Made by a program: the position numbers and the translations under genes. Below the pieces are notes generated by a model. It was not told where the DNA came from, did not search any database, and saw nothing but the letters and a program-made list of their open reading frames with translations. From Macrostomum lignano (lineage: Eukaryota): a stretch of DNA of 64,000 bases. Shown piece after piece: positions 1 through 44,200 of the stretch. Position 1 is the stretch's first letter; every line of letters begins with the position of its first letter. The stretch is taken from NCBI GenBank assembly GCA_002269645.1, contig NIVC01001037.1, positions 311,632-375,631 of the forward strand. Reading direction: 5' to 3'.

Positions 1-86
1 TATGTCCGGGAAAGTGATCGATTAAATCCTGCAAAATAAAATCTATGTCAATAACCTCCCTGAAAGTGAGCTTTAAAGTGGTTTAT

Positions 87-970
<884 letters not shown>

Positions 971-1323
971 CTTTTACGCCGAGGTGCGTAGCGCCTCGTG
1001 TATTAAAGTGTATTAAAGCCCAAGAAAAGCATAGAGGCCGTCTCTAAAGCAAGTAAAAGACAGTCCTAAAATTTTGTTCTTTTGGTCTAAAGGCTGGATC
1101 GATTTTATATGGTGCTTTAACCATAGGCAAAAAATTAGTTATTTTTATCACGAGAAAGGCCCCATGTTTATAATACCAAAATCGTTGATGGTTTTCACTT
1201 GTCACTTGTCATTTGTCACTTGTCACTTGTCATTCGTCAGCTTGTCACTTGTATTATTAATGAAATAGGCCCCAGGTATTTTTTAAGCAGTGATCTATAA
1301 AATCTAGTGTTTTATGCATGTCC

Positions 1324-1447
1324 ACTTACATGCCATACGCTCCTGACCGCTATGATAAACTCTACTTACATGTCATGCGCTCCTGACCGCTATGATAAAC
1401 TCTACTTACATGTCATGCGCTCCTGACCGCTATGATAAACTCTACTT
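1324..1447 (+). repeat. 40-bp tandem repeat ACTTACATGTCATGCGCTCCTGACCGCTATGATAAACTCT, about 3 copies, resuming at 2670-2725 after an insertion
   Basis: Direct reading; the array is interrupted by the 1448-2669 insert. Confidence 0.9.
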
Positions 1448-2669
1448 GTTTTTGTTTGTTAAACGAAAGGGTCCTAAGGGGGACCCGCGGATCAGCCACA
1501 TGGAAGGGCTCTGCCGCGAGGGGCACTGCCAGGGGCACAGCAATAGCTGTTTATAGAGCCCGAGATACCCCGAGAGAGATGGAGATTGGGCCCGGCATAA
1601 AGCGCGGGAGGGCGAAGTTGACCCAAGCCTACGGTACAAGACACCGCCAAACCAACAGTGGAATCAGGGACGGTGCTAGGACCGAATCCACCCAGGCTAC
1701 CCCCCCCCCAGTCCAAGAGCGGGGAAACCCAGAAGTCTTGGAAAGGGCTAACTATTGGAGCGAGTCTGGAAGGCTTGTATCCGAGGGGGAGACTCTAGGC
1801 GGACTCGGAACACCTCTATTGCTGCCAACCCAAGGGCATCGCCTATCCAGCTCATTATTGGGGGCCAGGCCAAGGGGTCGGGAAGAGGCACCAGGGGCAA
1901 GAGGACACCAGACTCAGCCGGTTGTCCCCGGTACGGGACGAACATCCTTCCCAGGACACCAATCCACTGTCAGGATGAGAGCCAGAGACACTCAAGCAGG
2001 GACCGTCAGCAGGAGCCAGTAGATGGACCCAAGGACAGAGCAGGGTGGACCGGGCAGTGGGCAGAGCTCATTACTCCGAAAGATTGGATGGCTACATAGG
2101 CCGGGGTTAGATAAAACCAATACTGTAAAAGGACTAAAACATAACTGGAGGAGCACCTGAACCCACGCAAAAAACCTGCAAAAAACCTGATGGTGGTTGC
2201 TAACCTTTTCGACGATGTGACTTTTCGAGCTTATGATGGTGGTTGCTTGACTTTTCGACGATGTGATTTTCGAGCTTGTGAGTTTTCGAGCTTGTGATGG
2301 TGGTTGCTAAATCAGTTTTCGACGATGTGAGTTTTCGAGCTTGTGAGTTTTCGAGCTTGTGAGTTTTCGAGCTTGTAATGGTGGTTGCTAAACTTTTCGA
2401 CGATATGATTTTTCGAGCTTGTGACGGTGGATGCTTTTCGACGATGTGATTTTTCGAGCTTGTGATGGGCCCCCCAGGGCCGATGGCCAAATTATTGGAG
2501 TACGAAAAAGAATAGGGTTTATTTTTAGACTGGGCACAGCCCCTCCGGGGCGGACCCTTAGTTATTGGGCTAGCCGAAGCTAGGCCAATCGGATTGCGCA
2601 AACCCTTAGACAAGCTACCAGAGAGGCAACCAGGGTAAAAACAGTCAGAGACCGTCTTTACGGCCTTAA
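1448..2669 (-). mobile_element. Non-autonomous retroposon-like insertion with SL-like 5' head, internal tandem repeats, 3' hairpin and A-rich tail
   Basis: 13-bp direct repeat ATAAACTCTACTT at 1435-1447 and 2670-2682. The minus-strand 3' end is hairpin GGGTCC-CCCTTA-GGACCC (1469-1486) followed by TTTCGTTTAACAAACAAAAAC. No recognisable RT ORF. Confidence 0.6.
2186..2466. repeat. Compound short-unit repeat (TTTTCGAGCTTGTGA / TTTTCGACGATGTGA / GATGGTGGTTGCT) inside the insertion
   Basis: Direct reading. Confidence 0.9.
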
Positions 2670-2838
2670 ATAAACTCTACTTACATGTCATACGCTATTG
2701 ACCGCCATAATAAGCTCCGCTTACCATGGCAAATCAAGACCCGTGAAGAAAGCCATTTCTTCATATTCACTGTACTGTCACTACTCAGTAGTCAGTAGTA
2801 GCACTCTGGTTTTTTAGTCCGAAATCAAAGAGACCGCA

Positions 2839-2886
2839 CAAGGACTACTTAACAACTGAGCGTCCTAAGTTGTTAAGTAGTCCTTG
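2839..2886. repeat. Perfect 19-bp inverted repeat with 10-nt loop
   Basis: CAAGGACTACTTAACAACT (2839-2857) and AGTTGTTAAGTAGTCCTTG (2868-2886). Confidence 0.9.
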
Positions 2887-3293
2887 AGACTGCACAGGCT
2901 CACATCACAGAGTGTAACATACTGTAATATGTGTAACCACACGGTCAATATTTAAGATCTTCTCTGGGTCTGCATACATGTATTTATAGCATTTGCTGTT
3001 ATACTAATTTTCTCGTTATAATATGCTTTCCGTTTGACAGTGTCTACATACACCATTCAAATTATGATTTTTGAAAATCCAAAAAGACTCAGATCCATGC
3101 TTTCATAGGTTTGAAATCGAAAATTTTTATTTTCAACTAAGCTGCCGAATACGGGTTCACAGCACGAATGCAATCATTTATTACCAGAAAGGATTAAGTG
3201 GGTCAAAAATGAACTTCTATCCGCCCACGCAAAATTTACCTATAAAATTTGTCCAACAGCCAAAAAACTAGCGCGCAAGGTAGAATCTGAAAA

Positions 3294-3975
3294 ATGGCGG
3301 CCACCACTCACAGAAAAACGCTCAACGAATTCGAAATGGAAGGCGTCGTGTGGAACAACTTTAAATTCCGACCGAGCGATGTTGCGATATTTGCGTGTGT
3401 ACTTTTCCCAGGTGCGGCACAACGCTTACTCAGGAAATTGTGTGGCAGCTTGTTCACCGAGACACCATCAAGCAAGGGGGCAAGTACGCTCCCATTGACC
3501 AACGGTTCCCGTTCCTGGAGTTCAACTACGGTTGGGGAGTCTGGTCCCGTAAAGTGGGGCATCGACAGGTTGGAGTCGGCTAGCGAGGATGAGCAGCGCC
3601 TCATCAAGACGCACGTCCCGTACGCGTTAATTTCGCACAGGTTAAACGAAGTGAAGCCTCGAGTGATTGCCGTGCTGCGCAACCCCAAAGACTGCTGCAA
3701 TTCGCTCTACCACTTCTACAAAGGCCTCGAGATGTACGGGCCCTGGTCGGGAACCTGAGACGAATTTGTTGACATATTCCTGAGCGGCAAGACAATGTGC
3801 GGCGACTACTTTCAGGTTAGTTTTGTGAGGCTTTAACCTGTACAGATGCAAACTTTGATACCGTATTTATTTAATTGCAAACTCCGCGTAATTAGGTCTC
3901 TGCGGACTGGTGGCAGCTCCGGAATGAGCCGAACGTGCTGCTCCTGAAGTACAAAGATCTGGTCAGCGAACCTGG
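3294..3975 (+). pseudogene. Cytosolic sulfotransferase (SULT) pseudogene, 3'-truncated
   Basis: PAPS-binding loop TFPRCGTT, KTH, RNPKD..SLYH, and W..R..PNVLLLKY.DL motifs. Two frame changes (about 3395 and 3555), TGA at 3756-3758 where a Trp is typical, GT-AG intron 3816-3895, and similarity lost after about 3975. Confidence 0.85.
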
Positions 3976-10411: not shown

Positions 10412-10604
10412 ATGGAGCTCTCAGACGAATGCCGAGACTGCGCCAAGGACAGCACGGATCCGGAGATCACGAAACGCCGCTATCGTTGCATCAATCCGGA
10501 ATGGTTCGCACCCAACATTCGGCTTCGACTGCCGTGCTTCCTGCCCAGGGGATTCTTTCTGATTACACACGAGTGAGTATTGTCTTACAGACAAACAGAC
10601 AGGC

Positions 10605-10685
<81 letters not shown>

Positions 10686-10688
10686 CTA

Positions 10689-10725
<37 letters not shown>

Positions 10726-12163
10726 GGCAGGCAGGCAGAATGTACTCCCTTAAGAAATCATATACCAAGCGATGCGCCAACCACGTGCCACCGCTGCAGC
10801 GTGGAGGTGAACATGCTGTTTCAGACGCAGACCGACAAGATTGAGGTTTTCACATTCGTGAAGCGCCTGTTCCAGGAGCACAACGCTCTGATTAGGGGCA
10901 GCAGGAGTCGGGCTCTGTTCATTGAGACAGCCTACCTGTTCTGCATGGATGTGAGTGCCTCATAGTTGGCTATGCTAAAAATATCCTTGCTTCCTTGTAA
11001 AACAGCCTTGCGATTAAATTTCACCCAGGTAGCCGAGAGCGCCATCTCGTCGAACTTCTTCATGTACATACCGAAGTCGCACTACAGGCGCTATTTGGAA
11101 GATGTGCCAATTTTGATGAAAGCAAAAGTCTGCATCATCATCGACTATCACAGGAGCCTGGCTTATCGATTTGGTAATTTTTTATCGAGATTGTTGATCT
11201 TAACTAAGTGTAAAATGACAAAACAAATGACCCCAACATCACCAGGCATTCGCGTCAGCAAGCTCACGGATGAGTCCGACCGCGGCACCGAGAGCACCAG
11301 GAACTCCCAGGTCGAGTCCACCATGGACCGACCGACCGTCCGCTTCCACCGGAACCGCGCCGCGGTGGAATTCATCCAGGAGGGCCGGGCCTGCACCATC
11401 GCTGGTGAGTCAGCTGCTATGGAATTTGCTGAAGCTGAGCTGCCCTTCAAATCCGCAAAATGACCGGAAATGCCTATTGGGGTCTGAAAAAATTAAAGTA
11501 TTACACTCACAGGCAGTATTACACTCACAGGTAGTATTACATTCACAGGCAGTATTACACTCACAGGCAGTATTACACTCACAGGCAGTATTACACTCGC
11601 AGGCAGTATTACACTCACAGGCAGTATTACATTCACAGGCAGTATTACACTCACAGGTAGTATTACATTCACAGGCAGTATTACACTCACAGGTAGTATT
11701 ACATTCACAGGCAGTATTACACTCACAGGCAGTATTACACTCACAGGCAGTATTACACTCACAGGCAGTATTACACTCACAGGCAGTATTACATTCACAG
11801 GCAGTATTACACTCACAGGCAGTATTACACTCACAGGCAGTATTACACTCGCAGGCAGTATTACACTCACAGGCAGTATTACACTCGCAGGCAGTATTAC
11901 ACTCACAGGCAGTAATAAACTCACAGGTAGTATTACATTCACAGGCAGTATTACACTCACAGGCAGTATTACACTCACAGGCAGTTTTACACTCACAGGC
12001 AGTATTACACTCACAGGCAGTAATACACTCACAGGCAGTATTACACTCACAAGCAGTATTACATCTCACAGGCAGTATTACATTCGTACACATTGCAGAC
12101 ATTATCGCCACAAACAGGGCCATCCAGTCCAAAAGGAACACGGACCCGTTGCGGCACCCGTGA
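10412..12163 (+). CDS. Unknown 5-exon protein-coding gene (about 250 aa): exons 10412-10572, about 10731-10950, 11029-11173, 11246-11404, 12099-12163
   Basis: GT-AG junctions with compatible phases and GC3-rich codons. Two of four exon-1 substitutions versus the duplicate are synonymous in this frame (CGA/AGA, CTG/TTG). The exon-2 acceptor is ambiguous within a CAG array. Family not recognised. Confidence 0.7.
10587..10738 (+). repeat. (ACAG)n microsatellite filling intron 1
   Basis: Direct reading. Confidence 0.97.
11497..12084 (+). repeat. 18-bp minisatellite AGTATTACACTCACAGGC, about 32 copies, intron 4
   Basis: Direct reading; the VLHSQA and CECNTA ORFs derive from it. Confidence 0.97.
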
Positions 12164-13909: not shown

Positions 13910-16900
13910 TCAGTTCTGAGACTGGGGCGTGTGAGGTTCAATCACTCCCAAACCGCTGATTTGGCGAACTTGCGAAGAATCTCTGAAAAAGAATGTGAAA
14001 CAAGTTGAATAGTGTAAGGTATAATGACACAGGTTTGCAGATTCTTTGTAAACCTGTCCTTACCTAGCAGAAACAGGGCTATTGCTGCTGAAGTCTGCGC
14101 AAGCCCCTAAATAAGGCCTTGCTTGAAAGTGATCCTGGACCTGGAGACTTTCCGGTGTAAGATAAGCCGACAGATCGCCTACTGATAGCCTAAAATAAAA
14201 AAGTAAATGTGCGTTTGTTTACCTTTGCTAATAAACAAATTAAGATTTCATGCATGTGATACAGGATTCTGTCATACCTGCTACCGGTATTGGGTCCTAG
14301 GCCTCGCTCAGCTCTCAGACGCTCTCCGAGTTCCCGAATTTCCCTGTCGCGAGAGCAGCATGAAGTCTAGCGCGCAATATCCATTGTGGTTAGCGAGCGT
14401 CGGGGAGGCTTCCTTGTCCAACAGAGCCTGGACGCACTGAACTGACCGCTGCTGCACAGCAAGCATCAGTGGTGTCACTCCATCTTTATTCTTTGCGTCG
14501 ACTGTAGCTCCTTCTGTCAGCAAGCCTCAACTTCAATCTGATTAGATTTGTAAGCAGCCCAGTGAAGAGCAGTGCTCTGAGTCTCATTCTGATGGCTTGC
14601 ATTTACATGGCAGTTTTCCAGTAAAAACTTGGCTGCCTCCGTGTTGCCGTGAAGCACAGCCAGCATGAGGGGTGTGTCGCCGTGCGCGTCAATGGAATCG
14701 AAAAATTCTTCATTGGACGAGTGCTGCTTTAAATAGAAAAGAATCTCCTTGTTGCCTCCAATGGCAGCTAAGTGGGCGGCGTTTCTTCGCAACAAATTTC
14801 GATCGTTAAGACTACAACCAAGCTTTCCGTGCAACACCTCCAGTAGCCGGGTCCTTCCCAGAACAATGGATTGTAGGAGGGGCGTGTCTCCATTCACATC
14901 CGGTTCTTTCGCCCGGACTCCGGGGTCACTAATCAAGTGCAGCAGAATCTGCTCGTGACCAGCTGCAACAGCTTCGTGCACGAGCGTATAGCCGCGCTTT
15001 GTTTTCACCCCGAGACTGCAGCCGATTTTCTCGAGCTTCCGAAAAATGTGATAATTGCCTACTCTGACGGCAAGCGTTAGTGCAGTTTCTCCGTTCTGAT
15101 TTGCTTCATTTAGGAGCCTTTTATTCTCTTCTGTGCTCTGATTGTCCCGGATCAGCATCAGTGAAGCAAATATTGACTGCCACTGGCTATCACAGCATCA
15201 CGAATTTGCCCTGACTGTTTCTTACAAACTCGCGTCGCTGAAGACTCCTGAGCGCTGCTGCCTGACCAGTAGACGCCAAATGGCAAAATAAGGACTCGCA
15301 GACGCTGTCACTGTGATTTCTCAGGTGCATCGTCACGGCGAACCGGCTGTTTCCTGAGCGAGCCGCCAATTCCAGCATTGAGCGGCCATCTCTAACCGCA
15401 AGTTGTGGGTTCCAGCCCTTTTCAACCAGCAGCTGGTACATCTCTTCGTTGCCTATTCGCGCGGCTAGGTGCAAGGCGGTTTCTTCATAACAATTTTTGG
15501 CATCCTTTAAAAAGTCGAATTCAGACAAAAGCCACCGTAGGGTGCTCAGTTTGGATTCAGAAACCGCCACGTGAAGCAAGGTGTTTTTGTTATTGTTCAC
15601 GTCGTCTTTGATTCCGGGTGCTTCCGCAAAATCTCGCGGGCCAAATCAATTTGGCCAAATCGAATAGCGGTCAGCAAGGGCGTGTACCCCTTAGCATCTT
15701 TGACTGTAACGCTTGCACCTCTGCTGAGCAGTTCATTAATAAGACTACTGCGACAAGTTTCTATGCCAAGTGGAGTAAATTCCACTGACTTTCGCGCCTG
15801 TCTACTGGTACACCCAAATCGAGCAACTCTGTTAAGTTCTTATTCTTTCGAGAGCGAATGTTAGTACGAAAGACTTCGAAATTCGGAGACAATGTGTCGG
15901 CCGATAGACGAGCACCCGTTTGTAAGAGCAAATCGATGATACTCCGACTGCCCCGAAAGAATGCCTCCGCTAATACAGAGACTCCATCCTTGCTGACCAC
16001 ATTCACGTCTGCACTTTTGGCTAATAAAAGTTGGCAAATTTCAAAGCCTTTAGAAGCCGATAAAGCGCCAAATATCGGTGTCTTTCCATTTCCATCAATA
16101 GCATTCGGATCAGCTCCGTATTCGAGCAGCAACTCAACAATATCAAGCTTTAAATTGCGGCATGCGACATGGAGGGGCGTTTCAAAGTCGCCATTTCTGG
16201 CATGCAGAAGGGATTCATTCTTCTCAATTAGGCTTTTAGCAATCTTCTTTGAACCTCCTTTACAAGCAAAGTGAAGGAGAGTGTTCTTCAGTGAGTAGAC
16301 TTTCACTGAGTCTTCGTCAGTAATTGGCCAGATTTTTGACAAAACATCTTCATCACCGCGCAGGCACGCAATGGAGACAGCCGAATCACCATCATTGTTT
16401 GTGTGTCTTTTTTCCAAGCCAAAATCGATTAGTAGGCCAACTAATTCTGCACTGGCCTTTGCTGCTGCCAGTGTCAAGCACGAGTCACCTGACTTAGTTA
16501 CCGTGTCGATAGGGAACTTCTTTTCGATTAAAACCTTCAGAATTTCGAGCTTGTTACACCTGCACGCCAGGTGAGCAGCACTGAGACCGTCTTCTGTTTC
16601 GGTGTCTTTGCTGCACCCGTGGCGATTAATATCTGCACCATGCTATCGGCCGCAGCTTGCCCACCTCTATGGCAATCAAGAGAGGTGTCCAACCGTTTGA
16701 CTTCCGATTGTTCACGTCGCATCCAGCGCTAATTAGATCAGACAGAAGCTCGCTATTCTGGCCAATGATTGCATACTCAAGCGCAGTCTTGCCGTAGTTA
16801 TCTTTAGCTGTCACAAAGTTCAGGTCTGGTACCGTCGTTAAGAGAATTTTCACAGTTTCCCTTGACCCAGCCAGCGCCGCCAGCATCAGGCTCGTGATTC

Positions 16901-19444
16901 CTGCCGAGTCAATGCAGCAAATGGAGACGTTTTTCTCCACCAGCTTCTGTAGAACTTCAAGTCCACCTGCCTCGCAAGCAAAATGGATGGCTTGTCTGTT
17001 TTCTTTAGTGCAGGGTTCAAGCAGAACGTTTCTGGATAGCAGAAAGTCTACAATAGACGAGTCGTTATTGGAGCATGCTATCATAAGTGGCGTCTTGCCC
17101 GTTTTGTCTTCTTGGTCGAGGCAACAGTCCTTCCGTTCTAGCAGCTTCACCATGTCAAAGAATCTCATCTGCGTTGCCATGTGGACCGCATTTTCACCTT
17201 GATTGTTTCTCAAGTTAACATCGGCACCGTAGTCCGCGAGTTTCTTAACCACGTCTTCGTTGCCTTCTCTAACGGCTAGCAAGAACAGAGTGAGCCCGTA
17301 TTTGTCTTTTGTATCGAAAACGCACTTTAAATTGTTAACAAGATAGACAATTGCTTCAGGATGCCCCTTCATGGCAGCGAAATGCACAGCGGTTCTGCCG
17401 CACTCGTCTGTAGCGTTTTTATTGTCATTCTCTTCTGGCGAGTCTCGGTGGAGATACCGAATAACATCGACTTGGTTTTTTGCTGCAACTTGCATTAGGA
17501 TAGTCTTACCCTTTCTATTAATGTTCATTATAGGTTTTCCGCTTGCAGCAAAATGTGTCAGTAAGTCCACCCTACCCATCTTGGCGGCCATGCTCAAAGC
17601 AGAATTTCCTTTGTTATTCTTAACAGTGGAACTACACCCGTACCCAATTAAAGCAATGACAATTTTTCGAGTCAGGGAGCCGTCCTCAGACTGCGCGGTG
17701 ATTGCCTTCATGAGAGGGGTATTGCCCTTGTTGTCGGCAATGTCCATGGGGACTTTCTTCTCAATCAAAAGCTTGATCAGCGGCCAGTTAAGAGCAGAGG
17801 TAGCTTGAGAAGCTACTGTATTTCCCTTATTATCGATGACATTAATCTTGCAACCCTGATCTAACAGGAATTTGACAGTCTCCAAAGCGTTGTCTTTTGA
17901 GCCTGCAGCTACCAATATTGCAGTCTTGCCTTCTGAGTTTGGTACATCGAAGTTTGCTTGATGACTTTTTAGCACATTCAGCACGCTCAACTGCCCATTG
18001 GCGGCAGCCAAAAGTGCCGGAGTATTTCCAGCTCTATCGATGCGATTTACGTCGCAGTTATTTTCGGCAAGATAGGCGACTGTCTCTGCGGTGCCGGCGT
18101 GACACGCTGCCATGACTGCAGTTCGACCGTCCTTCGCTCTCGGAATGTCCAGTGGCATACTAGCTTGATGAAGCTGCTTCAGCATTTGGACTCGGCTTAG
18201 TTCAGCTGCCAGTTGAATCAGATTTGACTGGGTTTCACATTCGAATTGGTCGGTAGATTTCATTGCGTCAAGCACGCAATCGAAGATCTCTTGATTTTCA
18301 GATTCGATGCAGTAGGCTAGGGGCATTTCCCCATACCATCTTTCAGGTGCACGTTGGCACCAGCTCTAAGTAGCATCTTCACAAATTCTATATGGCTATT
18401 CATTACGGCTGAAAACAATGGTGTTCTACCCAGGTTGCAAACCCGATTTACGTTGCAGCCTTTGCTCAATAGAAGCTCTGCAATCTCTTCGCTTCCTTGC
18501 TGAGCAGCGTAGAACAACGGGGAGCTGTTGGTATTGTCAATCTTGTCGAAGTTTCCATCTTGTTCTGCAACTAGATGGAGAAACTCTGTGGAGCCAATTT
18601 GGGAGGCTACATGAGCGATTGTCTGCTCATCCTTGTACTGGAGATCGCACGGCTTTTCGGCGTCTCGTTTCGGATAATTTTCCAGCCAATAACGGACGCA
18701 TTCGGTTGCATGGCTCCGTACCAGCTCCGGTATGGTCTCGTTGTGCACCGCCGCGTCAAACTGCAGAGCCAACTGCTTCTCTTCCAGAATAGCAAGACTC
18801 TGCAGGTCGTGAGCAGCAAAGGCCAAGTCAGCGGCTGTGAATCCCTGGCGATTTTTTACGACAAGATCTGCGCCACGGTCAGTTAGCAGCCGGAGCAGAT
18901 GTGGTTGCTGATTAACGGTTGCCAGCATTAGAGGCGTGTTGCCGTCTTGGTCCTGAGCGTTGATACTGGCCCCTTCGGAGAGAAGCCTGCTGGCAATCTC
19001 ACTTTGTCCGTTTCTAGCTGCGCAGTGAAGCGCAGTCAATCCGTAGGCGTCTTGACAGTCGACACTCGGAACTCTGCGCAGGGCCATCTGGCAGGACTCT
19101 AGGTCGCCAGATTCAGCTGCGCGATGTAGACTACGGGTTGCTCTTAGTAGGGCTTCATCAGGCTCACCGTCTTCTCTGCTGTCGGCGCGACTTGACAAAG
19201 AAGCCGAGTCGTCACGCCATTGCATGAAGCGCCTAATCTGGAGAGCGAGCTCCTCCAATTTAGCATACTCGAGCTGATCTAATCTTTGAGTGCTCAATTT
19301 GGATAGCAGTTCCTTAATACCTTGAGGAAGACGAGTGCCAGTTGATGGTTCATTTGACGAGTTTTTTATTCCAAGCTGCAGAAGAAGTTCCTCGACTTCT
19401 CTCGCCTTCTTGCGTTTTTTGTTGTTGTCGCTGGGCTTCGGCAT
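13910..19444 (-). CDS. Giant ankyrin-repeat protein A (about 1790 aa if frames are restored); exons 19444-14278, 14189-14064, 13982-13910; frameshifted as assembled
   Basis: Continuous ankyrin consensus (G.TPLH.A...G...V..LL..GA.VN) across successive frames, collinear with the paralog at 24789-29916. Nine frame breaks. GT-AG junctions in phase 2; exons 2-3 are less certain. Confidence 0.85.
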
Positions 19445-23464: not shown

Positions 23465-24335
23465 TCAAAACGGCAAAGAGTTGAGCAGAGGCTGCGCCAA
23501 CTTTCGGCTTTCCGGATTGTCCAGGTAAACACTTTTGAACACAGTTGCCAATTCTGCAGGAAAGATCCGCTCGGTGATGAGTAAACTCACCGGCAGTTGC
23601 AGCCTCTGAGCGCGACAAAACACGCGCAGCAGGTAGCTTTCAGTAAGGTCGCCCGCTTCGCTCTCTGGTGGGCAGCCAATCAGCGCCTCGTGCAGAGTGC
23701 AGCCGAAGGCCCACATGTCACCCGCCTGCGTTGCCAGCTTTGGATCTTCGCTGCTGACCCGTCGTAGCTCCGGCGCAGTCCACGGGTCATAGCGCCGGTG
23801 ACTGTTAGCTACGTGAGCCGCAAGCTGAGACAGCATTCCGTAGTCGCTAAGCTTCAGCACGTGATTGTCAGTGACGAAAATGCTGGCCAGAGTGAGCCGG
23901 CCGTGAGTGATACTGTTTGAGTGCAGATAAGCTAGGCCGCTGAGAACCTGTTTGGCCACCATGTTACCAAACTCTCTATCCAAGCAGTGATGAATTTGGT
24001 CCCGATCTCTGATCCGATCGAGGCATTCGCTAAGCCGTCTTTTCGGCAGACTTATTGACAGTTCCAAAGTTGGTCGAGGCTCCAGACCGTACTTGATGTC
24101 GGCTACTTGGCAGAGATTGGCGGCCTCTGATTCTGAGCTGTCGCTCTTTGGGAACTTGAAACTCTGGACCATGGCATCATCTATCAGTTTCTGCCACTTC
24201 CGATCAGAGCTTTGAGTTTCTATTTTTAACATAAAATAGCCCATCGAGATGGACCGGTGAGCGGTGAAGGCTGCCGCGATTTCTTGGGAATCATCGAGGT
24301 CTTCAAAATGAACGGAAGATTGTCGCCGGTTTCTA
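23465..24335 (-). other. Pseudokinase domain exon resembling the receptor guanylyl cyclase kinase-homology domain
   Basis: LAYLH..ITHGRL (no HRD Asp), VLKLSDYGM, WTAPELRR, TQAGDMWAFG, and a subdomain XI-like NPESR. Confidence 0.8.
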
Positions 24336-27300
24336 CTAAAAAGCGAGAATAAAAGTGCCTCAGATTTATATTGTATTTCTATGCCTTGAATATAGCTCGT
24401 GTATTAGAAATGTATGACAGCCAGGAGGTTTGAAATCACCAAAAAGCAATCATCCATAAAATTCAGCATGCCCTACCTTGCATGACCCGCCAACTGCTCA
24501 AAACCAAACTGCTGTGCCATGGAGGTTAGAGATATGCTCGACTGGTAGCTGATGACTGAGGTTGTCAGCCGCCTTTGTGTGACACGCCGTGACGCAACTT
24601 GTGCGATATCTTCCGGCTCATCCTCTTCTTCGTCTGACTCTTAAGGTCGCTGATCAGGGAAATGGTCATAGTAGTGGCAACTTACCTCCGTCAAATGGCC
24701 CAGTGACTCAATTGTTGTTAGCCTAAAATGTAATCGATACGTTTGTGCATTTTTGGAAGATTATTATTAAGTAGCCACAGGATGTTACCTGTTTGTCACA
24801 TCCATGTGGCTGCCACCATGAAGCTCTCTACCAAGATCCTTCATCTTGCCATCATCCGAGTGGAGCATGAGAGCTAGCGCACTGTCTCCGTACCTATTTT
24901 TCGCCGTCAAAGAAGCTCCACTATCTAGCAGTGCTTTGGCACACTCCGTTGACTTTTCTTGTACCGCCAGCATTAACGGTGTCACGCCATCTTTGTCCAG
25001 CAAGTCCACTGCGGCATTCTTCGATAGCAAACCACAAACTGCAGTCAAATTAGATTTCTGAGCGGCCCAGTGAAGAGCGCTACTCTTAGTCTCATTCTGA
25101 TGGTTCACATCCAAAGCGAAGTTTTCCAACAGATAACTGAAGGCATCAGTTTTTTCGTGAAGTACCGAAAGCATCAGGGGTGTATCACAATGCAAGTCAG
25201 AGGCATCAAATAATTCGGCAGGCAAGTTTTGCTTCAAGTATTTTAAATTTTCAAGGTTCCCCGCAATCGCACCCAAATGGGCAGCATTGCGATTGAGTCT
25301 GTTGGTTCTCTTTAGGTCGCATTTGTATTCACTGTGAAGAACTAAGGTAAGCCTTGTTTTTTCTAGATTCACTGCTTCAAGAAGGGGTGTATCCCCATCA
25401 TTGTCCGCCTCCTCAAAGGATGCATTTCTCTGAATTAAGTACCGCAGGATAGGCTCATGATTAGCCACTACTGCCTTTTGCACTAAGCTGACACCGTGTT
25501 TTGTTTTAACTGACAAATCGCATTTAACTTTTTCAATGAGCTCTCGGCAAAGATGGAAATTGCCTCCGACAACTGACCGAGAAATTGGTGTCTCACCATC
25601 CCTATCTGGGCGATCCAGATCGACTCTCACATTTATCATCCATGTGCACATGGCCTCGTGACCAGTAAAGAACGCCATGTTTCTGGCACCGAAAAAGTTC
25701 TCATCCTCATAGTTTTGGCCCGTTTCGTTGCATAGTTGTTGCAAAACCTTCAGTTGTCCTTCAAAAGCAAGAATTTCAAAGACTGAGGGTGTCTTCTTAG
25801 AAAATTGAATCGACAACTCGCCTTTTGCACGAAGGTGTCTGAGCAAGCTCATGCTGTTCGACATAGCTGAAATATGGCTTACTCGATATTTATTTTGCTC
25901 TTCCTCAAGAATAAGTGCAGAGTCGAATCCCTTCTGGACTAAGAGCTCGTACATTTTCACACTGCCCTTCGACGCCGCAATGTGAAGAGCAGTTTGTCCT
26001 TGTTTGTTTCTCACGTTTTTCTCAAAGTCAAACCTCGTCAGAAGCCAAGTCAAAGTGCTGAGTTTATTCTCTTTAGCAGCGATGTGCAAAACTGTGTCAC
26101 CTTTATTGTTAACGTCATTCTTTGTCTCTGGATGCTTTTTCAATATTTGTCTAGCAACGTCAATCCTACCGAAAATGACAGCGCTTAGAAGCGGCGTGTT
26201 GCCTCGTTCGTCTTTCAAATTAACGCTGGCACCCCGGTTGAGCAGTTCGGTGATGAGCTCGCTGCGACTCGTCTCAATTCCTAGATGCAGCAGGTGCCAG
26301 TCCTTCTCGAGGCGGTCAATCGATAAACCGGCATTCAAAAGTTCATTTAGATTTTTAAACTTCATTTGAAGAAGATTTGTTCGAAATACCTCAAATGATG
26401 CTGGGAGCTTCTCTGGAAAAAGGGGGGCCTCCTCCGCTTGAAGCAGTCGGATGATTGACGTCTTGCCTTTGTGATAGGCCTTAGCCATAGCGGACACTCC
26501 TTCTGAGTTCAAAAGACTCAAATCAGGTTTTTTGTCCAAAATTGATTTGCAAATCTTAAAATTGCCTGCAGAAATAGCCATGAATAGAGGTGTCTCGCCC
26601 ATCTCGTCCACCGAATTAATGTCTGCCCCTTGCTGAAGCAGCAAGTCAACTAATTCAAGCTTTGAGCAGCGGGATGCCACATGAAGAGGAGTCTCCAACT
26701 TGCTGTTCTTGGCTTCCAAAAGAGTTGGATCTCGGTCGAGTAGGCTTTCAATCAGCTTCTTCAAACCTCCTTCGCATGCCAAGTGCAGCAAAGTGTTTCC
26801 GTTGGCATATTTGTTTGAAACATCGGAATCGCTCACCGGCAAAAGTTTGGACAGAACCTCTTCGTTGCCCCTCTGGTATCCAAGAGAGACCGCCGAGTGG
26901 CCTTCACAGTTGATTTGGCTTTTGCTGAGTCCAGCATCCACGAGCAAGCCAATCAGCTCTGCACTTCCTTTTGGTACGGCTAGCGTCAAGCAAGAATCGC
27001 CTGATTTGGTTAGACTCTCAATCGACATGCCTTTTTCTATTAAAACTTTCAAAACTTGCAACTTATTATATTTGCAAGCTACATGAGCAGCATTGAAGCC
27101 ATCCTCAGTGACGGCGTCCACGCTGCACCCACGCTCAATGAGTGTCTGCACCACCTCATCAGCACTCTTTGAAGTAGACGCGATTGCTAGCATCAGCGGA
27201 GTTCGACCGTCTTTCTGTTGATTGTCTACGTTGCAGCCAGCATCAATCAGCTGTTTGATAACTTTTTCCCGGTCCCAAACGATAGCGTACTCGAGTGCTG

Positions 27301-29916
27301 ACTTGCCAAAGATATCTTTCATTTCGACTAACTGCTGCTTTCGAGTGATCAAAGCCTCAATGATTTCACTGGATCCCGACTGAGCCGCGAGCATCAGCGT
27401 TGAGATTCCACTCGAATCAGCGGCATGCACGGGAACACCTAGGTCAATGAACCGCTTTGCAATATGGGCCTTACCGGATTCGCAGGCTACATGAATCACC
27501 TGACGGCCATCTTTGGAGAATGACTTAGGAAAACAGTTTCTCGACAGCAGAAAGTTAATGAGAGCCATCTTTTTCTTTTCACATGCCAGCATGAGCGGCG
27601 TTTTCCCTGACTTGTCTTCTTGATCTAAAAGACATCCTTTCTGATCTAGGAACCTAAGTAGTTCTAGTGATTCCGCTTGCACTGCCAAGTGGGCAGCATT
27701 TTCGCCCCCGTTGTTTCGAATATTGACATCTGCTCCCAAATCGTAGAGCTTCTCTGCCACCTCTTTATGCTTTTTTTGAACAGCTAGCATGAATGGTGTA
27801 TTGCCTTGAAAATCTTTGGCGTCCGTCTCAGCATGCATCTCGTTCGACAGAAAGTCGACAGCTTCAGTGTGCCCACCGACAGCTGCGTAATGTACCGCTG
27901 TTCTCCCTACATCACAAGTTGCTTCCAAGTCGCTCATTGCCTTTTCTGACGCTTTTATAAGACGAAGAACAGCGAGTTGGTTTCGTTTCGACGCTTGCAT
28001 GATGATTGTCTTTCCTTTTTTCGTAATATTCACCAGCTCTTCACCAATCGAGTCCAAGTACTGCAAAACATCCAAGCTTCCTTGCTTCGCAGCGATACTG
28101 CAGGCTGTGTTTCCAGCATTGTTTCTAGTCTCTACGTTGCATTTGTTTGTTACAAGTATTTGCAACATCTTCAAGTTTGCAGGCTTCATTGCTGCGATCA
28201 TCAGAGGCGTATTTCCTTTTTTGTCCTGGCAGTCGAGGGGTGCGGAGTACCGAATCAGAGCGTGCAGCATCTCCATGTTGTCGGTCGTTGCTGCATAGTA
28301 CGCCAGTGTGTGTCCGTTTTTGTCTATCACATTGATGTCGCAGTGTTTTTTGTACAGATACTCAACCAGAGGCAGCGACTTCTTCTGCGCAGAAACCAGG
28401 ATGGCCGTCTCCCCTCTTTTATTTGGCACATCAAGCTGGGCTTTCCGTTTCGCTAAAACCTTCACCGTAGCAAGGTCGTTGTTGAAGCTGGCTCTCAGGA
28501 CAGGAGTGATTCCGTTTTTATTTACTACATTCACATTGCACCCATGATCAGCCAGATACTCTACCATCTCGGGGCAGCGTACCTGACAGGCAGACAGCAG
28601 AGCTGTCTCACCATCTTTGTTATTCACAGCGTCCAAGGGCAGCCCACGCTCGTGCAGCTGCCGTAGCATTTGGAACCTTTTATAGAGAGCTGAAATAAGA
28701 ACTAGATCATTGCCGCTTTCATCGATTACGCTGCAGTCAGCTTTCTTCTCGTCGAGCAAATAGTCAAAGATCTCCTGGGAGCCGCAAACAATTGAGCAGG
28801 CTAGCGGGCACGTTCCTGTCTTGTCCTTGATATTAAAGTTCGCGCCTTCTTCGACGAGAATTTTTACAATATTTAAATGACTATTGACGATGGCAGAGAA
28901 AAGAGCGGTTCTGCCTGTGTCCCGAACTCTGTTCACGTCGCATTTTTTTGGATCAGCATTCTGACGATGCTGTCGTAGCCATTCTGAGCTGCGCAGAAAA
29001 GTGGAGAGCTGTTCGAATTGTCTGGCAGGTCAAGGTCCGCTTTAAGGCTGTCAACTAGGACCAGAAGCTCTTCAGATCCGTTAAGGGCGGCCGTGAAAGC
29101 GATAGTACGACCGTCTTTATATTGAAGGTCACATGGCTTGACGTCGTCTGTCTGCGGATAGTTGTTCAGCCAATATTCAATCATCTTCGTCGAGCCTTTC
29201 TGCGCAAAGGATAGTATCGATTCGTTGTGAACTTTGCAGTCGAATTGAAGAGATCTTTCTCGCTCTTGTATCAGATCTAAGGACTCACGATCTTCAGCAA
29301 TGAAGGCCAAATCTGCTGCAGTAAAGCCTTTCTTATTCCTCCATTGCAAATTTGTTCCACGTTCAACCAGAAGTCGGAGGAGTGGCCTGTGCTTCTTCAT
29401 TATTGCGAGCATAAGTGGCGTGTCTCCATCGCTGTCAGCGGCATTGACGTCGGCACCTCTGGATAGCAGCAGGTTAACGACATCAGATTTGTCTTCATAC
29501 GTGGCCGCGTGAAGTGCGGTAGCGCTTTTCTGACCTCGAGCATTCACATCGACCCCTTTCTGTAGCATCATGCTGCAAAATCCCACATTGCCTAGCGCAG
29601 CTGCGCCTAAAAATGCACCAATTTCTGCATTCACTTCAGTCTCATCTTCGCTGTCGGAGCTTTCGGATGACGAATCCTTCTCGCTACTCCCTTTCTCCGC
29701 CATAGCTTTAAACTTTTTAAATTTCGCTTTCATTTTCTTTTGCTCTTCTTTCATTCTTGCTTTTAATTCCTGAGGGTTATCCGGAAGGTTCAACTCTCTA
29801 CTCCGCCGTTCCATTTGCTCGACGAATTGTCGGGGAAGTCCTTCGCCAGCCTGCATAGACTGCAGAGCAGCAAACATGCTGCCCAGCTCCATCAGCATGG
29901 GATTGAGCTCCTCCAT
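23465..29916 (-). CDS. Giant ankyrin-repeat protein B fused to a C-terminal pseudokinase (about 2080 aa model); exons 29916-24789, 24722-24477, 24335-23465
   Basis: ORFs 28933-29916 and 24785-28936 are ankyrin arrays separated by one frame break in an A7 run. Donors AG|GTAACA and AG|GTAGGG and acceptors TTTTAG are all phase 2, and exon 3 is in frame with the kinase ORF. One in-frame TAA at 24643-24641. Confidence 0.8.
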
Positions 29917-38507: not shown

Positions 38508-39543
38508 ATGACGTCCAGCAGCAGCAGCAGCACAGAGCTCAAGCGCCTCCTAGGCATCGACGGTAGCGTTGAGATGACTGAAGACGACCTGACGCAGTGC
38601 ATGGGAGTGTTCAAGCGATTCTCCTCGAACGACAGAATTCCAGTCTCAAAGCTCAAAGAGGCCTTCGATGCTCTGCAACTCTACGTGAACGAGGTTTATT
38701 TTGAGGTAGTATTAATATTTTTAAATATGTTCTGGGGTGCTTGCTATCTGGGGGATGCTTGCTATCTGGGGGATGCTTGCTATCTGGGGGATGCTTGCTG
38801 TCTGGGGGATGCTTGCTGTCTGGGGGATGCTTGCTGTCTGGGGGATGCTTGCTATCTGGGGGATGCTTGCTATCTGGAGGATGCTTGCTATCTGGGGGAT
38901 GCTTGCTATCTGGGGGATGTTTGCTTTCTGGGGGATGCTTGCTATCGGAGGATGCTTGATATTGGGGAGGCAAGAGGCTTTTTTAGAGGGAATGTCTGCT
39001 GTCTTTGTGAAGGCTTTATTTCGCTATCTTTTTGTTACTTGTAGAGAACAGAGATTCTATCCAGATGTCCCCCATCGGGGGGCGAAGATTGCTAGTAGAC
39101 ATCTAAAACTATAGTTTAAAGCTTTTTATACCCTAGAAATCCCTTTTTATATACACTTACATTCATTACAATATGATTAGATATCATCATTGCAGATGCA
39201 TATCGATTGTTTGATATTTCAGGAAATAGTCGACGCCCACCTTAAACGCGACGTGCAGTCTATGGAATTCTACGACTTCGCCAGCCTGGTGTGCTCAAAG
39301 AAGGCTAAAAAGCGCCGGAGCACTCACGCTGTGCTGTTCTCAATATTTGGCTTCCTGGACAAAGACCAGGACGGATTCATCGGCGCCCAGGAGCTCAAGG
39401 AGACCATGGACATGCTGGGAGAGATAGGCACAGACGAAAAGGTGAACAAGATGATCGGACAACTGGATAGAGGCGGTACTGGCAAGGTCAGCTATGAGGA
39501 CTTTGTCATCATGCTCAGAAGGAGCATCGAGGAGCCGCTCTGA
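38508..39543 (+). CDS. Calmodulin-like EF-hand protein 1 (degenerate N-lobe); exons 38508-38693 and 39223-39543 (alternative in-frame acceptor 39196)
   Basis: EF loops DKDQDGFIGAQE and DRGGTGKVSYED; phase-0 GT-AG intron. Confidence 0.8.
38731..39110 (+). mobile_element. Dispersed element carrying an 18-bp minisatellite (TGCTTGCTATCTGGGGGA) plus a conserved unique tail, copy 1
   Basis: Similar to 46120-46440 in both the repeat and the tail TTTTGTTACTTGTAGAGAACAGAG...GCGAAGATTGCTAGTA. Confidence 0.7.
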
Positions 39544-41215: not shown

Positions 41216-44200
41216 ATGAGCTCGAAATCAGCTGGTTCAAATGGCGGCCAGAGCAACAGCGGCAGTGAGGACAGCGAGATCGACGACCTACCGGAGGTGC
41301 CGCCGATCCGTTCTACTCGACTCCGGCGCCTGAGCCGGCGGCCCAGCAGTCCTACGGCCCTGCGCGGTCGCTACAAGCCGCTGTCCAGATCGGCCAGCCT
41401 GACTGTGGCCGACTTCACTAGCCAATGGTGCGAAGTGTTTCGAATGTTCGACTCCAATCTGGACGGCGTTCTATCGGCCGACGAGCTCGGCGGAAAGATG
41501 CGCAATCTGGGGTACAATGTGACGCAGACCGAGGTTGAGGTAATTAATTATGTTAGTTGAGTTATTGGCTGTGTGTTCACAGGTGAGGACATTGCTCAGT
41601 TTTTAACACCGCAGCTGAAGAGTAAACCCGCCAGTAAATGGTCCTGGCCTTTTGCGAGTTTGAATTTACCTTTTGGACACAGATTTGGAAGCTCATATAC
41701 TTCCAAAATATCTTTATCTCCAGGGGTTTCTCCAAAGGTTTATCTCCAAAGTTTGCTGTCTACATGTGCACTTCAAACGTTTCCAGTGGACTAATTGGTG
41801 TTTTTGGTAGAGACAAACGGTAAAAGAAACTTGCAATAAAGTGAAAAGTTCAAATGGTTTAGGCCTTTTGGTTCTAACGGTACGAGCGTATGTCCTAAAG
41901 AAATTATTGAAGGAGAAAAGTTTCTTCCTTCCTATATACTAAAAATGAGTTGTCTGTATGTATGTGGGTAGGTATGCGATAGATTTCAGAAAAAATGGCT
42001 CAATTGATTTTCTTCAAACTTGCACCATTCGATCAGAAATTTTCCTGGGACGGTACATGCATCTTGGCTAAGAAATTGCTCAATGATAAAGGGATTAAAT
42101 ATTCGAAAAACATGCTTTTTTGCAAAGGTCAAGCAGCTCTTTCGACCTGGAATGCATTGTAAGAATGCTAGAGAAAAAACTGACTGGCTGAATTCCGATT
42201 GTGATAAAGATTGCCTCACAACAAGTTGAAAACAGTGTCGAAGAAATGCACACACGACTTGATTAAAATTGCGTAACCATATTGCTAACTTAAATTGAGA
42301 CTGATACTGGCTGACTGAGAAATTGATTATGTCATAACTTTTTACTTCAATTGACTTGCTGTAAGAATTGAGTTATAAGGGCCACAATTCATGTTCTCCA
42401 ATTGAAAAGAGATAGCCAAGATGCGAACAGACTGGAATGCTAACGTAGCGACCTGGGTTCGAATCTTAGTAGGGCAAAAAAGATTTTTTTTATTAAAACA
42501 CCTTAAAAACACAAAACTTCTAAACATAAAAGAAGCGCAATGTCAAACATAGAAGAGCCACCATGTCGAACATAAAAGAGCTAACATATCGAATATTAAA
42601 GAGCCACCATGTCAAACCTAAACGAGCCACCATGTCTAATATTTAAGAGGCACCATATAAAACATATAAGTGACTTTATGTCAAACATAAAAGAGCCACC
42701 ATTTCGAACATTAAACAGCCACCATTTCGAGATTAAAGAGCCACCATTTCGAAAATAAAAGAGCCACTATTTCGAACATTAAAGAGCCACCATTTCGAAC
42801 ATTAATTAAAGAGCCACCATGTCGACCATAAAAGAGCCACTATTTCGAACATCAAAGAGCCACTATGTCAAACATTTAGGAGCCACTTTTTCGAACATTA
42901 AAGAGCCACCATATCGAACATAAAAGAGCCACTATTTTAAACATTAAAGAGCCACCATTTCGAACATAAAAGAGCCACCATGTCTATCATTAAAGAGCCA
43001 CCATGTCAAACATTCAAAAGCCACATTGTCAAACATTAAAGAGCCACTATGTCAAACATTTAGGAGCCACTTTGTCGAACATTAAAGAGCCACCATGTCA
43101 AACATAAAAGAGCCAACATGTCAGACTTTAAAAAAGCCACCGTATCAAATATAAAAGAGTTACCATGTAGAACAAAAAAGAGCCACCATATTGAACAAAA
43201 ACGAGCCACCATGTCAAACATAAAAGAGCCAACATATCGAATATTAAAGAGCCACTATTTCGAACAAAAGCGAGCCACCATGTCAAACATAAAAGAGCCA
43301 ACATATCGAATATTAAAGAGCCACCATGTCGAACATTAAAGAGCTACCACGTCAAACCTAAACGAGCCACCATGTCTAATATTTAAGAGGCACCATGTAA
43401 AACATCTAAGTGACTTTATGTCAAACATAAAAGAGCCACCATTTCGAACATTAAACAGCCACCATATCGAACATTAAAGAGCCACCATGTCGAAAATAAA
43501 AGAGCCACTATTTCGAACATCAAAGAGCCACTATGTTAAACATTTAGGAGCCACTTTTTCGAACATTAAAGAGCCACCATGTCAAACATAAAAGAGCCAA
43601 CATGTCAAACATAAAAGAGCCAACATGTCAAACATAAAGAGCCACCATGTCAAACATTTAAGAGCCACCATGTCAAACATATATGTGACTTTGTGTTAAA
43701 CATTAAAGAGCTACCATTTCGAACATTAAAGAGCCACCATGTCAAACATGAAAGAGCTATAACATGAAGAATATTAAAGAGCCACCATGTCGAACATAAA
43801 AGAGCTGCCATGTAAAATAACAAAGAGCTACCAAGTTAAACATAAAAGAGCCACCATGTAAAACATTAAAGAGCCACCATGTGAAACATTAAAGAGCCAC
43901 CATGTTAAACATTAAAGAGCCACCATGTTAAACATTTAAGAGCCTTCGTGTCAAACCTAGAAGAGCCACCATGTCGAACATAACAGAGCTACCATGTCAA
44001 ACATTAAAGAGCCACCATATCAAACATTCAAAAGCCACATTGTCAAACATTGAAGAGCCACTATGTCAAACATTTAGGAGCCACTTTGTCGAACATTAAA
44101 GAGCCACCATGTCAAACATAAAAGAGCCAACATGTCAGACATTAAAAAAGCCACCGTATCAAATAAAAAAGAGTTAACATGTAGAACAAAAAAGAGCCAC

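Follow-up and report, generated by a model that had tools for sequence, protein, structure and literature searches.

A non-coding, retroposon-like insert of the flatworm Macrostomum lignano begins with a hairpin formed around 22 nt homologous to the spliced leader

Short interspersed elements (SINEs) of the SINEU type have heads derived from the U1 or U2 small nuclear RNAs (snRNAs), the U6-L1 chimeric retrogenes of mammals arise when a reverse transcriptase (RT) switches templates, and composite retroposons of the SVA type contain internal variable numbers of tandem repeats. Relics of the spliced leader (SL) in retrogenes were reportedly described by Slamovits and Keeling in 2008, and transcripts of the SLACS element start at SL position +1. 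SLACS and CZAR insert at nt 11/12 of the mini-exon in trypanosomes (PMC5814959), and the head of the Pr77 retroposons, like the SL promoter, binds TBP and SNAP50 (PMC8190864). In parasitic flatworms, 597 loci with partial leaders lie beside long terminal repeat (LTR) elements or long interspersed elements (LINEs) and have been ascribed to trans-spliced transcripts (PMC12582326). Here we analyze a 1222-bp insert from the free-living flatworm Macrostomum lignano, located at positions 1448-2669 of a window formed by the final 64,000 bases of contig NIVC01001037.1 (approximately 313,079-314,300 when mapped back to that record). Its sense strand is the minus strand, and its 5' end carries a short stretch of the leader of this species.

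The insert interrupts a 40-bp minisatellite of 3.1 units (1324-1447, resuming at 2670-2724; period 40 and 97% matches by Tandem Repeats Finder, TRF). It is bordered by a 13-bp target-site duplication (TSD), ATAAACTCTACTT, whose left (1435-1447) and right (2670-2682) copies are identical at 13 of 13 positions, and the array resumes in register from the right copy. When 1448-2669 and one copy of ATAAACTCTACTT were removed in silico, the 40-bp array came exactly back into register; the boundaries used here rest on the TSD and on this restored phase. A first-pass annotation of the window had described a 1222-bp insert in a 40-bp array with a 13-bp duplication, and it was right on this point, as it was on a minus-strand 3' stem-loop with an A-rich tail, which we find as a hairpin with a 6-bp stem (1469-1486) and a tail (1448-1468). 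The ends of the insert read GTTTTT...CCTTAA, and a repeat comparison detected no terminal direct or inverted repeats (LTRs or terminal inverted repeats, TIRs) at them. With a 13-bp TSD, an A-rich 3' end abutting it and no terminal repeats, the insert has the hallmarks of non-LTR retroposition, that is, of insertion of the target-primed reverse transcription (TPRT) type, which typically leaves TSDs of variable length between about 7 and 20 bp. The insertion is young, because the TSDs are still identical.

From 5' to 3', the SL-derived hairpin is followed by about 170 nt of structured sequence, tandem repeats that span about 280 bp, a section of about 700 nt with a higher GC content than the flanks, a second hairpin and the A-rich tail. 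Such a layout agrees with a composite retroposon dependent on a LINE, or with a LINE that has an internal deletion. The tandem-repeat block (2188-2468, minus strand; TRF) has 16-nt subunits and periods of 41-81, and apart from it the repeat comparison found no internal repeat family in the insert. The 16-nt motif CTCCAATARTTWGSCC (minus strand) occurs twice, at 1745-1760 and 2485-2500, and also at 2562-2568, and CCAAT/ATTGG motifs cluster within the first ~180 nt of the insert. These motif copies and this cluster may be CCAAT-box-like promoter elements or the product of internal duplication.

On the minus strand, the insert starts with TTAAGG (2664-2669), followed by the 22-mer CCGTAAAGACGGTCTCTGACTG (2663-2642). 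We compared it with the published M. lignano leader, CCGTAAAGACGGTCTCTTACTGCGAAGACTCAATTTATTGCATG (PMC5173321), and found 21 of 22 positions identical to leader nt 1-22, the only difference being T18G; the count rises to 22 of 23 when the G at -1 is included. BLAST against two SL RNA genes, described below, likewise gave 95.7% identity over 23 nt. The leader given in the first-pass annotation, said there to differ at one position over 22 nt, is confirmed by these comparisons, and the true SL thus does match. A single pattern, CCGTAAAGACGGTCTCT[TG]ACTG, covers both the leader and the insert head, position 18 being T in the former and G in the latter, and the 35-nt head reads TTAAGGCCGTAAAGACGGTCTCTGACTGTTTTTACC. 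The 22-mer occurs once in the window, where 0 matches are expected by chance even with up to three mismatches; for matches with at most one mismatch, simple arithmetic gives an expectation of about 0.006 in the 764-Mb genome. The likeness stops sharply at nt 22. Leader nt 23-44, the AUG, the GUAAG donor and the Sm region are all lacking, and beyond nt 22 the alignment to the SL RNA gene scores no better than shuffled sequences (396 of 500 shuffles scored equal or higher). Regarding the six extra 5' nucleotides, only the G at -1 agrees with the sequence upstream of the SL genes; this G, at 2664, could be a match to SL gene position -1 or could be cap-templated, and the remaining TTAAG looks like filler. 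A literature search returned no mention of the G18 variant or of the junction sequence. Judged by sequence comparison, the insert's 5' end and the first 22 nt of the SL RNA are genuine homologues.

Folding of the head placed the 22-mer and the next 7 nt in a 12-bp 5'-terminal RNA hairpin, GUAAAGACGGUC-UCU-GACUGUUUUUAC (2635-2661, minus strand; nt 3-29 counted from CCGT), with a free energy of -13.2 kcal/mol, and not in a 4-bp CCGU...ACGG hairpin. The sole mismatch to the leader, T18G, forms the closing C-G pair, and reverting G18 to T costs 2.7 kcal/mol. Besides, the UUUUUAC that starts right where the SL similarity stops complements leader nt 3-9. Among random or real 9-mer continuations, only 0.4% gave an equally stable hairpin. 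Two of the pairs are G·U and work only in minus-sense RNA, in agreement with the orientation given by the A-rich tail; we rejected a plus-strand sense, in which both would become C·A mismatches and the 3' end would not be A-rich. We also rejected an origin of the hairpin by fold-back (snap-back) synthesis, under which the left arm and loop would match the SL at 17/17 positions by mere coincidence. The insert head is structured and folds into several hairpins (z = -2.5 to -2.7). Since the insertion is young, with identical TSDs, and yet its SL piece is mutated and co-adapted with its neighbour, the head would already have been present in the source RNA, which suggests that it was inherited and remodelled rather than freshly joined at insertion. 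The hairpin may serve in 5'-end protection, as a promoter element or in recognition.

The insert is non-coding. An exact look-up of its eight open reading frames (ORFs) retrieved no called protein, and searches of 5.8 billion proteins with the 190-aa plus-strand ORF and with a pseudo-protein made from the remaining stop-free frames gave no homologue. Rfam families gave nothing at gathering thresholds, with one chance-level match at E = 2. The first-pass annotation had suggested a possible SINE, which is not supported in the defining sense. Taking as a yardstick the classical SINE, of ~100-700 bp, with a head from a tRNA, 7SL or 5S RNA and no internal terminators of four or more T, we rejected a SINE transcribed by RNA polymerase III (Pol III): ARAGORN found no transfer RNA (tRNA)-like sequence in the insert, no A or B box is present on either strand, the sense strand carries a T5 terminator at nt 23-27 from CCGT, just after the head, and six further runs of at least four T, and the length is 1222 bp. 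As the T5 tract, the six other T runs and the lack of A and B boxes and of a tRNA exclude Pol III, the polymerase must be RNA polymerase II (Pol II), which is also the polymerase of the SL RNA, if the insert is transcribed from its own 5' end.

Other element classes were rejected as well. An LTR element, a solo LTR or a DIRS element (the first-pass annotation had named an LTR/DIRS assignment among the findings that would tell against its proposal) is at odds with the lack of terminal repeats and of TG..CA ends and with a 13-bp TSD, versus 4-6 bp for LTR elements and none for DIRS. A Helitron, which makes no TSD, has 5'-TC...CTRR-3' ends and inserts at AT, or a TIR DNA transposon, which has a fixed short TSD, is at odds with the 13-bp TSD and with the lack of TIRs and of a CTRR end. 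Finally, an SL-gene-specific retrotransposon was rejected because this copy sits in a 40-bp minisatellite and no RT or endonuclease (EN) homologue was found in its six frames.

According to our preferred explanation, to which we give a probability of about 0.5, the insert is a LINE-mobilised, retroposed copy of a non-coding Pol II RNA that had captured its 5' end from an SL RNA gene; we infer LINE mobilisation and a Pol II or SL-type promoter, and the insert may be a member of a family. The source would be an RNA without coding capacity, about 1.2 kb long and most likely transcribed by Pol II, that began with SL nt 1-22, inherited from the source element and not gained at this insertion. The T18G change and the following UUUUUAC would have remodelled this SL piece into the stable 12-bp 5'-terminal hairpin, and a LINE-type RT would have pasted the copy, in minus orientation, into the 40-bp minisatellite by TPRT. 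The most economical origin of the head would be that the element captured an SL RNA gene's 5' end. A progenitor lying inside such a gene after leader nt 22 would be transcribed from the SL promoter and would carry SL nt 1-22; an equivalent recombination or template switch in an ancestor would be the alternative. CZAR and SLACS provide a precedent for retroelements residing within the leader, and Pr77 one for a short 5' head of a retroposon that recruits SL-promoter factors. For a progenitor inside an SL gene, we would expect the SL part to be followed by TTTTTACCCTGG and the 3' end of the element by CGAAGACTCAATTTATTGCATGGTAAG, and for transcripts that start at the head, we would expect reads beginning with CCGUAAAGACGGUCUCUG.

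In the context of the described systems, the insert is a variant of known associations between SL and retroelements, and not yet a new class. The 12-bp terminal hairpin formed by the SL 22-mer and the next 7 nt is new here, while partial leaders beside LINE or LTR elements have already been reported. As in the partial-leader loci of parasitic flatworms, a fragment of the species' own leader is joined to a retroelement-type insertion. Those loci were filtered out undissected and ascribed to trans-splicing, which predicts that the leader's 3' end is kept. The M. lignano insert, in contrast, comes from a free-living flatworm, is non-coding and flanked by TSDs, and carries at its exact 5' terminus only the first 22 nt of the leader, reshaped as a hairpin. 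Regarding the trypanosome elements, CZAR and SLACS lie after nt 11 of the mini-exon, so that an RNA made from the SL promoter would have the first leader nucleotides at its 5' end, and the insert shows a like architecture with 22 nt. However, SLACS, CZAR and CRE from trypanosomatids and NeSL-1 from nematodes are autonomous elements, with RT and EN ORFs, and are specific for SL genes, whereas the M. lignano insert is non-coding and sits in a minisatellite.

The Pr77-headed retroposons (L1Tc, NARTc and SIDER) have a short conserved 5' head, common to autonomous and non-autonomous elements, with an internal Pol II promoter (PMC8190864). Pr77 is not derived from a leader, unlike the M. lignano head, whose promoter role is putative. 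With SINEs, SINEU included, the insert would share a non-autonomous, LINE-dependent lifestyle, a 5' end derived from a small RNA, a TSD and a 3' end with a hairpin or A-rich sequence. The heads of SINEs, however, comprise most of the small RNA and classically carry Pol III promoters, whereas the insert has 22 SL-derived nucleotides, an immediate Pol III terminator and a length of 1.2 kb. The likeness to U6-L1 and SVA lies in a piece of a small nuclear RNA at the 5' end of a retrocopy and in a composite structure with an internal tandem-repeat block, respectively; chimeras of the U6-L1 type contain the full-length unmodified snRNA, whereas the head of the insert is partial, mutated and co-adapted with its neighbour.

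To compare the head with genuine SL RNAs, we used two complete SL RNA genes recovered from public collections with the head pattern, here called L003 (616-724) and L004 (1590-1697). Both have the same 44-nt leader as M. lignano, a GUAAG, two hairpins and a U-rich site, and they come from different genomes, since their intron hairpins differ. L003 is a 3-kb environmental metagenome contig of the Joint Genome Institute (JGI; Ga0302322_100095745, 1-3076) with a Macrostomum-type SL RNA gene and, at 1774-2919, an intron-less ORF resembling a Na/K-ATPase beta subunit, as identified by eye only. It probably belongs to a relative of M. lignano and not to M. lignano itself, because the exact ATPase-like protein is known from JGI/IMG alone. 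L004 (JAGQZA010000190.1, 1-3752) is a low-coverage contig binned in the metagenome-assembled genome 'Flavobacteriaceae bacterium HKST-UBA79' and is a flatworm-like eukaryotic contamination of this bacterial bin. It contains a U1 snRNA gene (1121-1283, 151.7 bits) alongside the SL RNA gene, with a leader that matches the M. lignano one at 44/44 positions, as well as TTAGGG-like repeats at ~270-340.

A covariance model (R1) built on these two genes scored them at 137 and 131 bits. In the 64-kb window, neither this model nor the pattern scan revealed an SL RNA gene. With the filters off, the model gave 10.4 bits at the insert, in an alignment where the leader 3' half, the donor and the Sm region were deleted or replaced; the aligned part shows the terminal hairpin followed by CCAAUAA, as in L003. 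Folding indicated that the leader of genuine SL RNAs pairs with the splice donor, and that the insert head forms a self-contained hairpin instead. The first-pass annotation had pointed to a GT 45 nt from CCGT; it is present, but so is another GT at nt 34-35, and the model does not align the former as a donor. Likewise, the terminal AUG is absent as stated there, but the reported lack of an Sm site does not hold entirely: a single site, AAUUUGG, fits the Sm consensus RAU3-6GR at nt 171-177 from CCGT, where ~0.4 are expected by chance. Its context is ambiguous, with an unpaired probability of 0.48 and a position away from the ~70-85 nt, between the two 3' hairpins, at which the site is found in SL RNA.

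Two candidates were discarded on these grounds. An SL RNA gene or pseudogene was rejected because leader nt 23-44, the AUG and the GUAAG are absent and because both the alignment and the covariance model fail, and a head made of a whole small RNA (an 'SL RNA-headed SINE', similar to SINEU) was rejected because the model fails and the similarity ends at nt 22. Hence, from the earlier proposal of an SL-derived non-autonomous retroelement, what stands is a retroposition-type non-coding insertion with 22 SL-homologous nucleotides at its 5' end, and what falls, by the covariance model, is a whole SL RNA head.

At its 3' end, the insert has the hairpin GGGUCC-CCCUUA-GGACCC (6-bp stem; 1469-1486, minus strand) followed by the A-rich tail UUUCGUUUAACAAACAAAAAC (1448-1468, minus strand), which abuts the TSD; together they read GGGTCCCCCTTAGGACCCTTTCGTTTAACAAACAAAAAC. 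No AAUAAA was found near this end. Written as (hairpin)CCC-UUUCG-UU-UAACAAACAAAAA, with the tail segment TAACAAACAAAAA, it is matched best, among all the DNA compared, by the 3' end of the U1 gene of L004 together with its flank, ...GUCCCUU/UCC-UAACAAACAAAAAA (in DNA form, CCCTT/TCCTAACAAACAAAAAA), the gene ending at 1283 according to Rfam. This match (window 1448-1486, minus strand, versus L004 1276-1300) scored 32, versus at most 25 in ~3,600 windows. The resemblance could reflect a shared snRNA-type 3'-end signal, a LINE-type tail or a coincidence in A-rich sequence. A more elaborate proposal, which we consider doubtful, is that the insert belongs to a Pol II-transcribed non-autonomous retroposon family built like a mobile snRNA-type unit. 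Its SL-captured 5' hairpin would bring along determinants of the start site or of an intragenic promoter, perhaps together with the SL RNA's cap identity, and its 3' end would mimic the terminal hairpin and flank of a U1-like, Sm-class snRNA.

Several observations weigh against a retroposed Pol II RNA with a captured SL head. Six extra nucleotides precede the SL part, so that the copy does not start exactly at SL +1, and the SL match is only 22 nt long. The covariance model with default filters gave no match at the insert. The tail is short and mixed (...AACAAACAAAAAC), with no clean poly(A). No second copy was found in ~104 kb of non-redundant M. lignano DNA, drawn from the 64-kb window and 78 kb of other loci; nor was a partner LINE or a shared 3' tail found, and no RT-like ORF was seen, by inspection only, among the 133 stop-free segments of the window.

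The 78 kb of other M. lignano loci were reached via exact protein look-ups and comprise a 92%-identical paralogue (L005), a second paralogue (L006) and two haplotype copies with 98-99% identity (L007 and L008). Outside this species, no further copies of the insert were found in viral contigs, and scans of metagenomes and prokaryote genomes with the head pattern returned genuine SL RNA genes only. The 92%-identical paralogue has the right flank and one diverged 40-bp unit, without the insert, and for this reason the expansion of the array and the insertion both followed the separation of the two loci; it is too diverged to give an exact empty site. The two haplotype sequences L007 and L008 reach as far as window positions 4309 and 5168. 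By collinearity, the allelic site should lie on the haplotype contig NIVC01001904.1 near 30,376. The sequence covered stops 1.6 kb before this site, with no annotated gene in the interval, and the sulfotransferase copy on that contig is a pseudogene.

One could argue that the insert is a one-off chimeric retrocopy, in which the RT switched templates onto the SL RNA or the 5' end of a trans-spliced mRNA and copied its first 22 nt. The SL part does sit at the outermost 5' end, with an abrupt stop at nt 22 and the T5 tract exactly at the junction; junctions of template switches often carry extra nucleotides, and only one copy was found in the window and the other 78 kb. A fresh copy, however, should have the exact leader, which is invariant in two genomes and in the literature, and the head has G18. 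Moreover, the adjacent 7 nt complement SL nt 3-9, in a 12-bp hairpin that only 0.4% of continuations provide, and TSDs identical at 13/13 positions make it unlikely that the helix-closing mutation arose after insertion. Besides, template-switch chimeras normally hold the whole small RNA up to its 3' end, not an internal 22-nt piece. For these reasons we find a one-off chimera unlikely.

Equally hard to favour is a processed retro-pseudogene derived from a non-coding RNA gene that is present in a single copy and has a transcript starting with an SL-like hairpin, for instance a diverged SL RNA paralogue with read-through, which would not be a mobile family. A single copy has been seen, and its structured head with several hairpins agrees with such a source. 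The weak full-length covariance alignment, 10.4 bits with the terminal hairpin followed by CCAAUAA as in L003, points the same way, but it is not significant at the scale of the window, and the sequence similarity beyond nt 22 is no better than that of shuffles. A single Sm consensus at nt 171 and a 3' end resembling that of the U1 snRNA gene with its flank would also fit. The tandem-repeat block and the hairpin with an A-rich 3' end, with no AAUAAA nearby, look instead like the body and tail of a retroposon and not like those of an snRNA or an mRNA.

We see still less room for a retrocopy made from an RNA, of a retroelement or otherwise, to which normal trans-splicing had added the leader, with an internal deletion, even though this mechanism was offered for the partial leaders tied to mobile elements in parasitic flatworms (PMC12582326) and ~30% of M. 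lignano genes are trans-spliced (PMC8629364). Trans-splicing should give the full 44-nt leader, with its 3' end (...UUGCAUG) abutting the body, and incomplete reverse transcription would trim the 5' part. The opposite is seen here, where nt 1-22 are kept and nt 23-44 are gone without residual similarity. Lastly, an SL likeness arisen by chance, or an insert that represents a DNA transposon, a Helitron, a solo LTR or part of a DIRS element, is very improbable: pairing of nt 18-22 with nt 10-14 does make the 22-mer partly self-determined, but the expected chance matches, 0 in the window at three mismatches and ~0.006 in the 764-Mb genome at one or fewer, and the position of the match at the very terminus of the insertion argue against the former, as do the 13-bp TSD and the lack of TIRs, LTRs or TG..CA ends against the latter.

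Other features of the window were also recorded. About 170 bp to the right of the insert, a 48-nt near-perfect palindrome (2839-2886, 87.5% self-complementary) lies in unique flanking sequence. A sulfotransferase-like pseudogene occupies 3294-3974; compared with its annotated paralogue in L005 (11749-12721, 297 aa), it has an indel or frameshift near 3400, and at ~3756 a TGG has become TGA. Positions 87-970 and 10462-11175 form a segmental duplication, 98% identical over 592 bp, which contains an (ACAG)n microsatellite as well as coding sequence from a gene's 3' part and ends short of the 40-bp array; the duplicate copy at 10966-11460 runs on into a different ORF. A 500-aa permease ORF of the window has exact coding copies on NIVC01001037.1 and a second contig of the assembly (GCA_002269645.1). 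A tandem pair of paralogous ankyrin-repeat genes with a C-terminal kinase-like ORF was located at 14517-19444 and 23465-29916. They are annotated here as ORF-sized pieces of 327 aa and 566 aa, compared with 1469-1789 aa on other contigs, and their region, which includes L006, L007 and L008, is found on at least four assembly contigs with 93-99% identity. Finally, the window is unusually rich in minisatellites. A 23-bp unit is repeated ~152 times over 3.5 kb (42522-46058), arrays with units of 15, 18, 22, 29 and 44 bp are also present, and several 18-bp GGGATGCTTGCTATCTGG arrays (38734-38967 and 46120-46287) lie inside or beside EF-hand-like ORFs.

Regarding the significance of these results, the insert would remain a curiosity, a single chimeric retrocopy, if it were unique. 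In practical terms, trimming of reads based on the SL, or searches for M. lignano SL genes that use the 5' part of the leader, could catch copies of this kind. If other copies share the head, the SL RNA would join tRNA, 7SL, 5S and the U-snRNAs as a source of retroposon 5' ends. The route would then be an unusual one, in which a capture of 22 nt was made into a hairpin on a Pol II transcript, with no Pol III promoter. Capture of the 5' end, rather than trans-splicing, would then be another explanation for the hundreds of partial-leader loci in flatworms. The loci combining partial leaders and mobile elements that SL surveys have discarded would merit re-reading, with the half of the leader that is kept as a simple and decisive criterion. 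A shared head of this kind would also tie the trans-splicing apparatus of flatworms to the expression of retroelements, as do SLACS, CZAR and Pr77 in trypanosomes.

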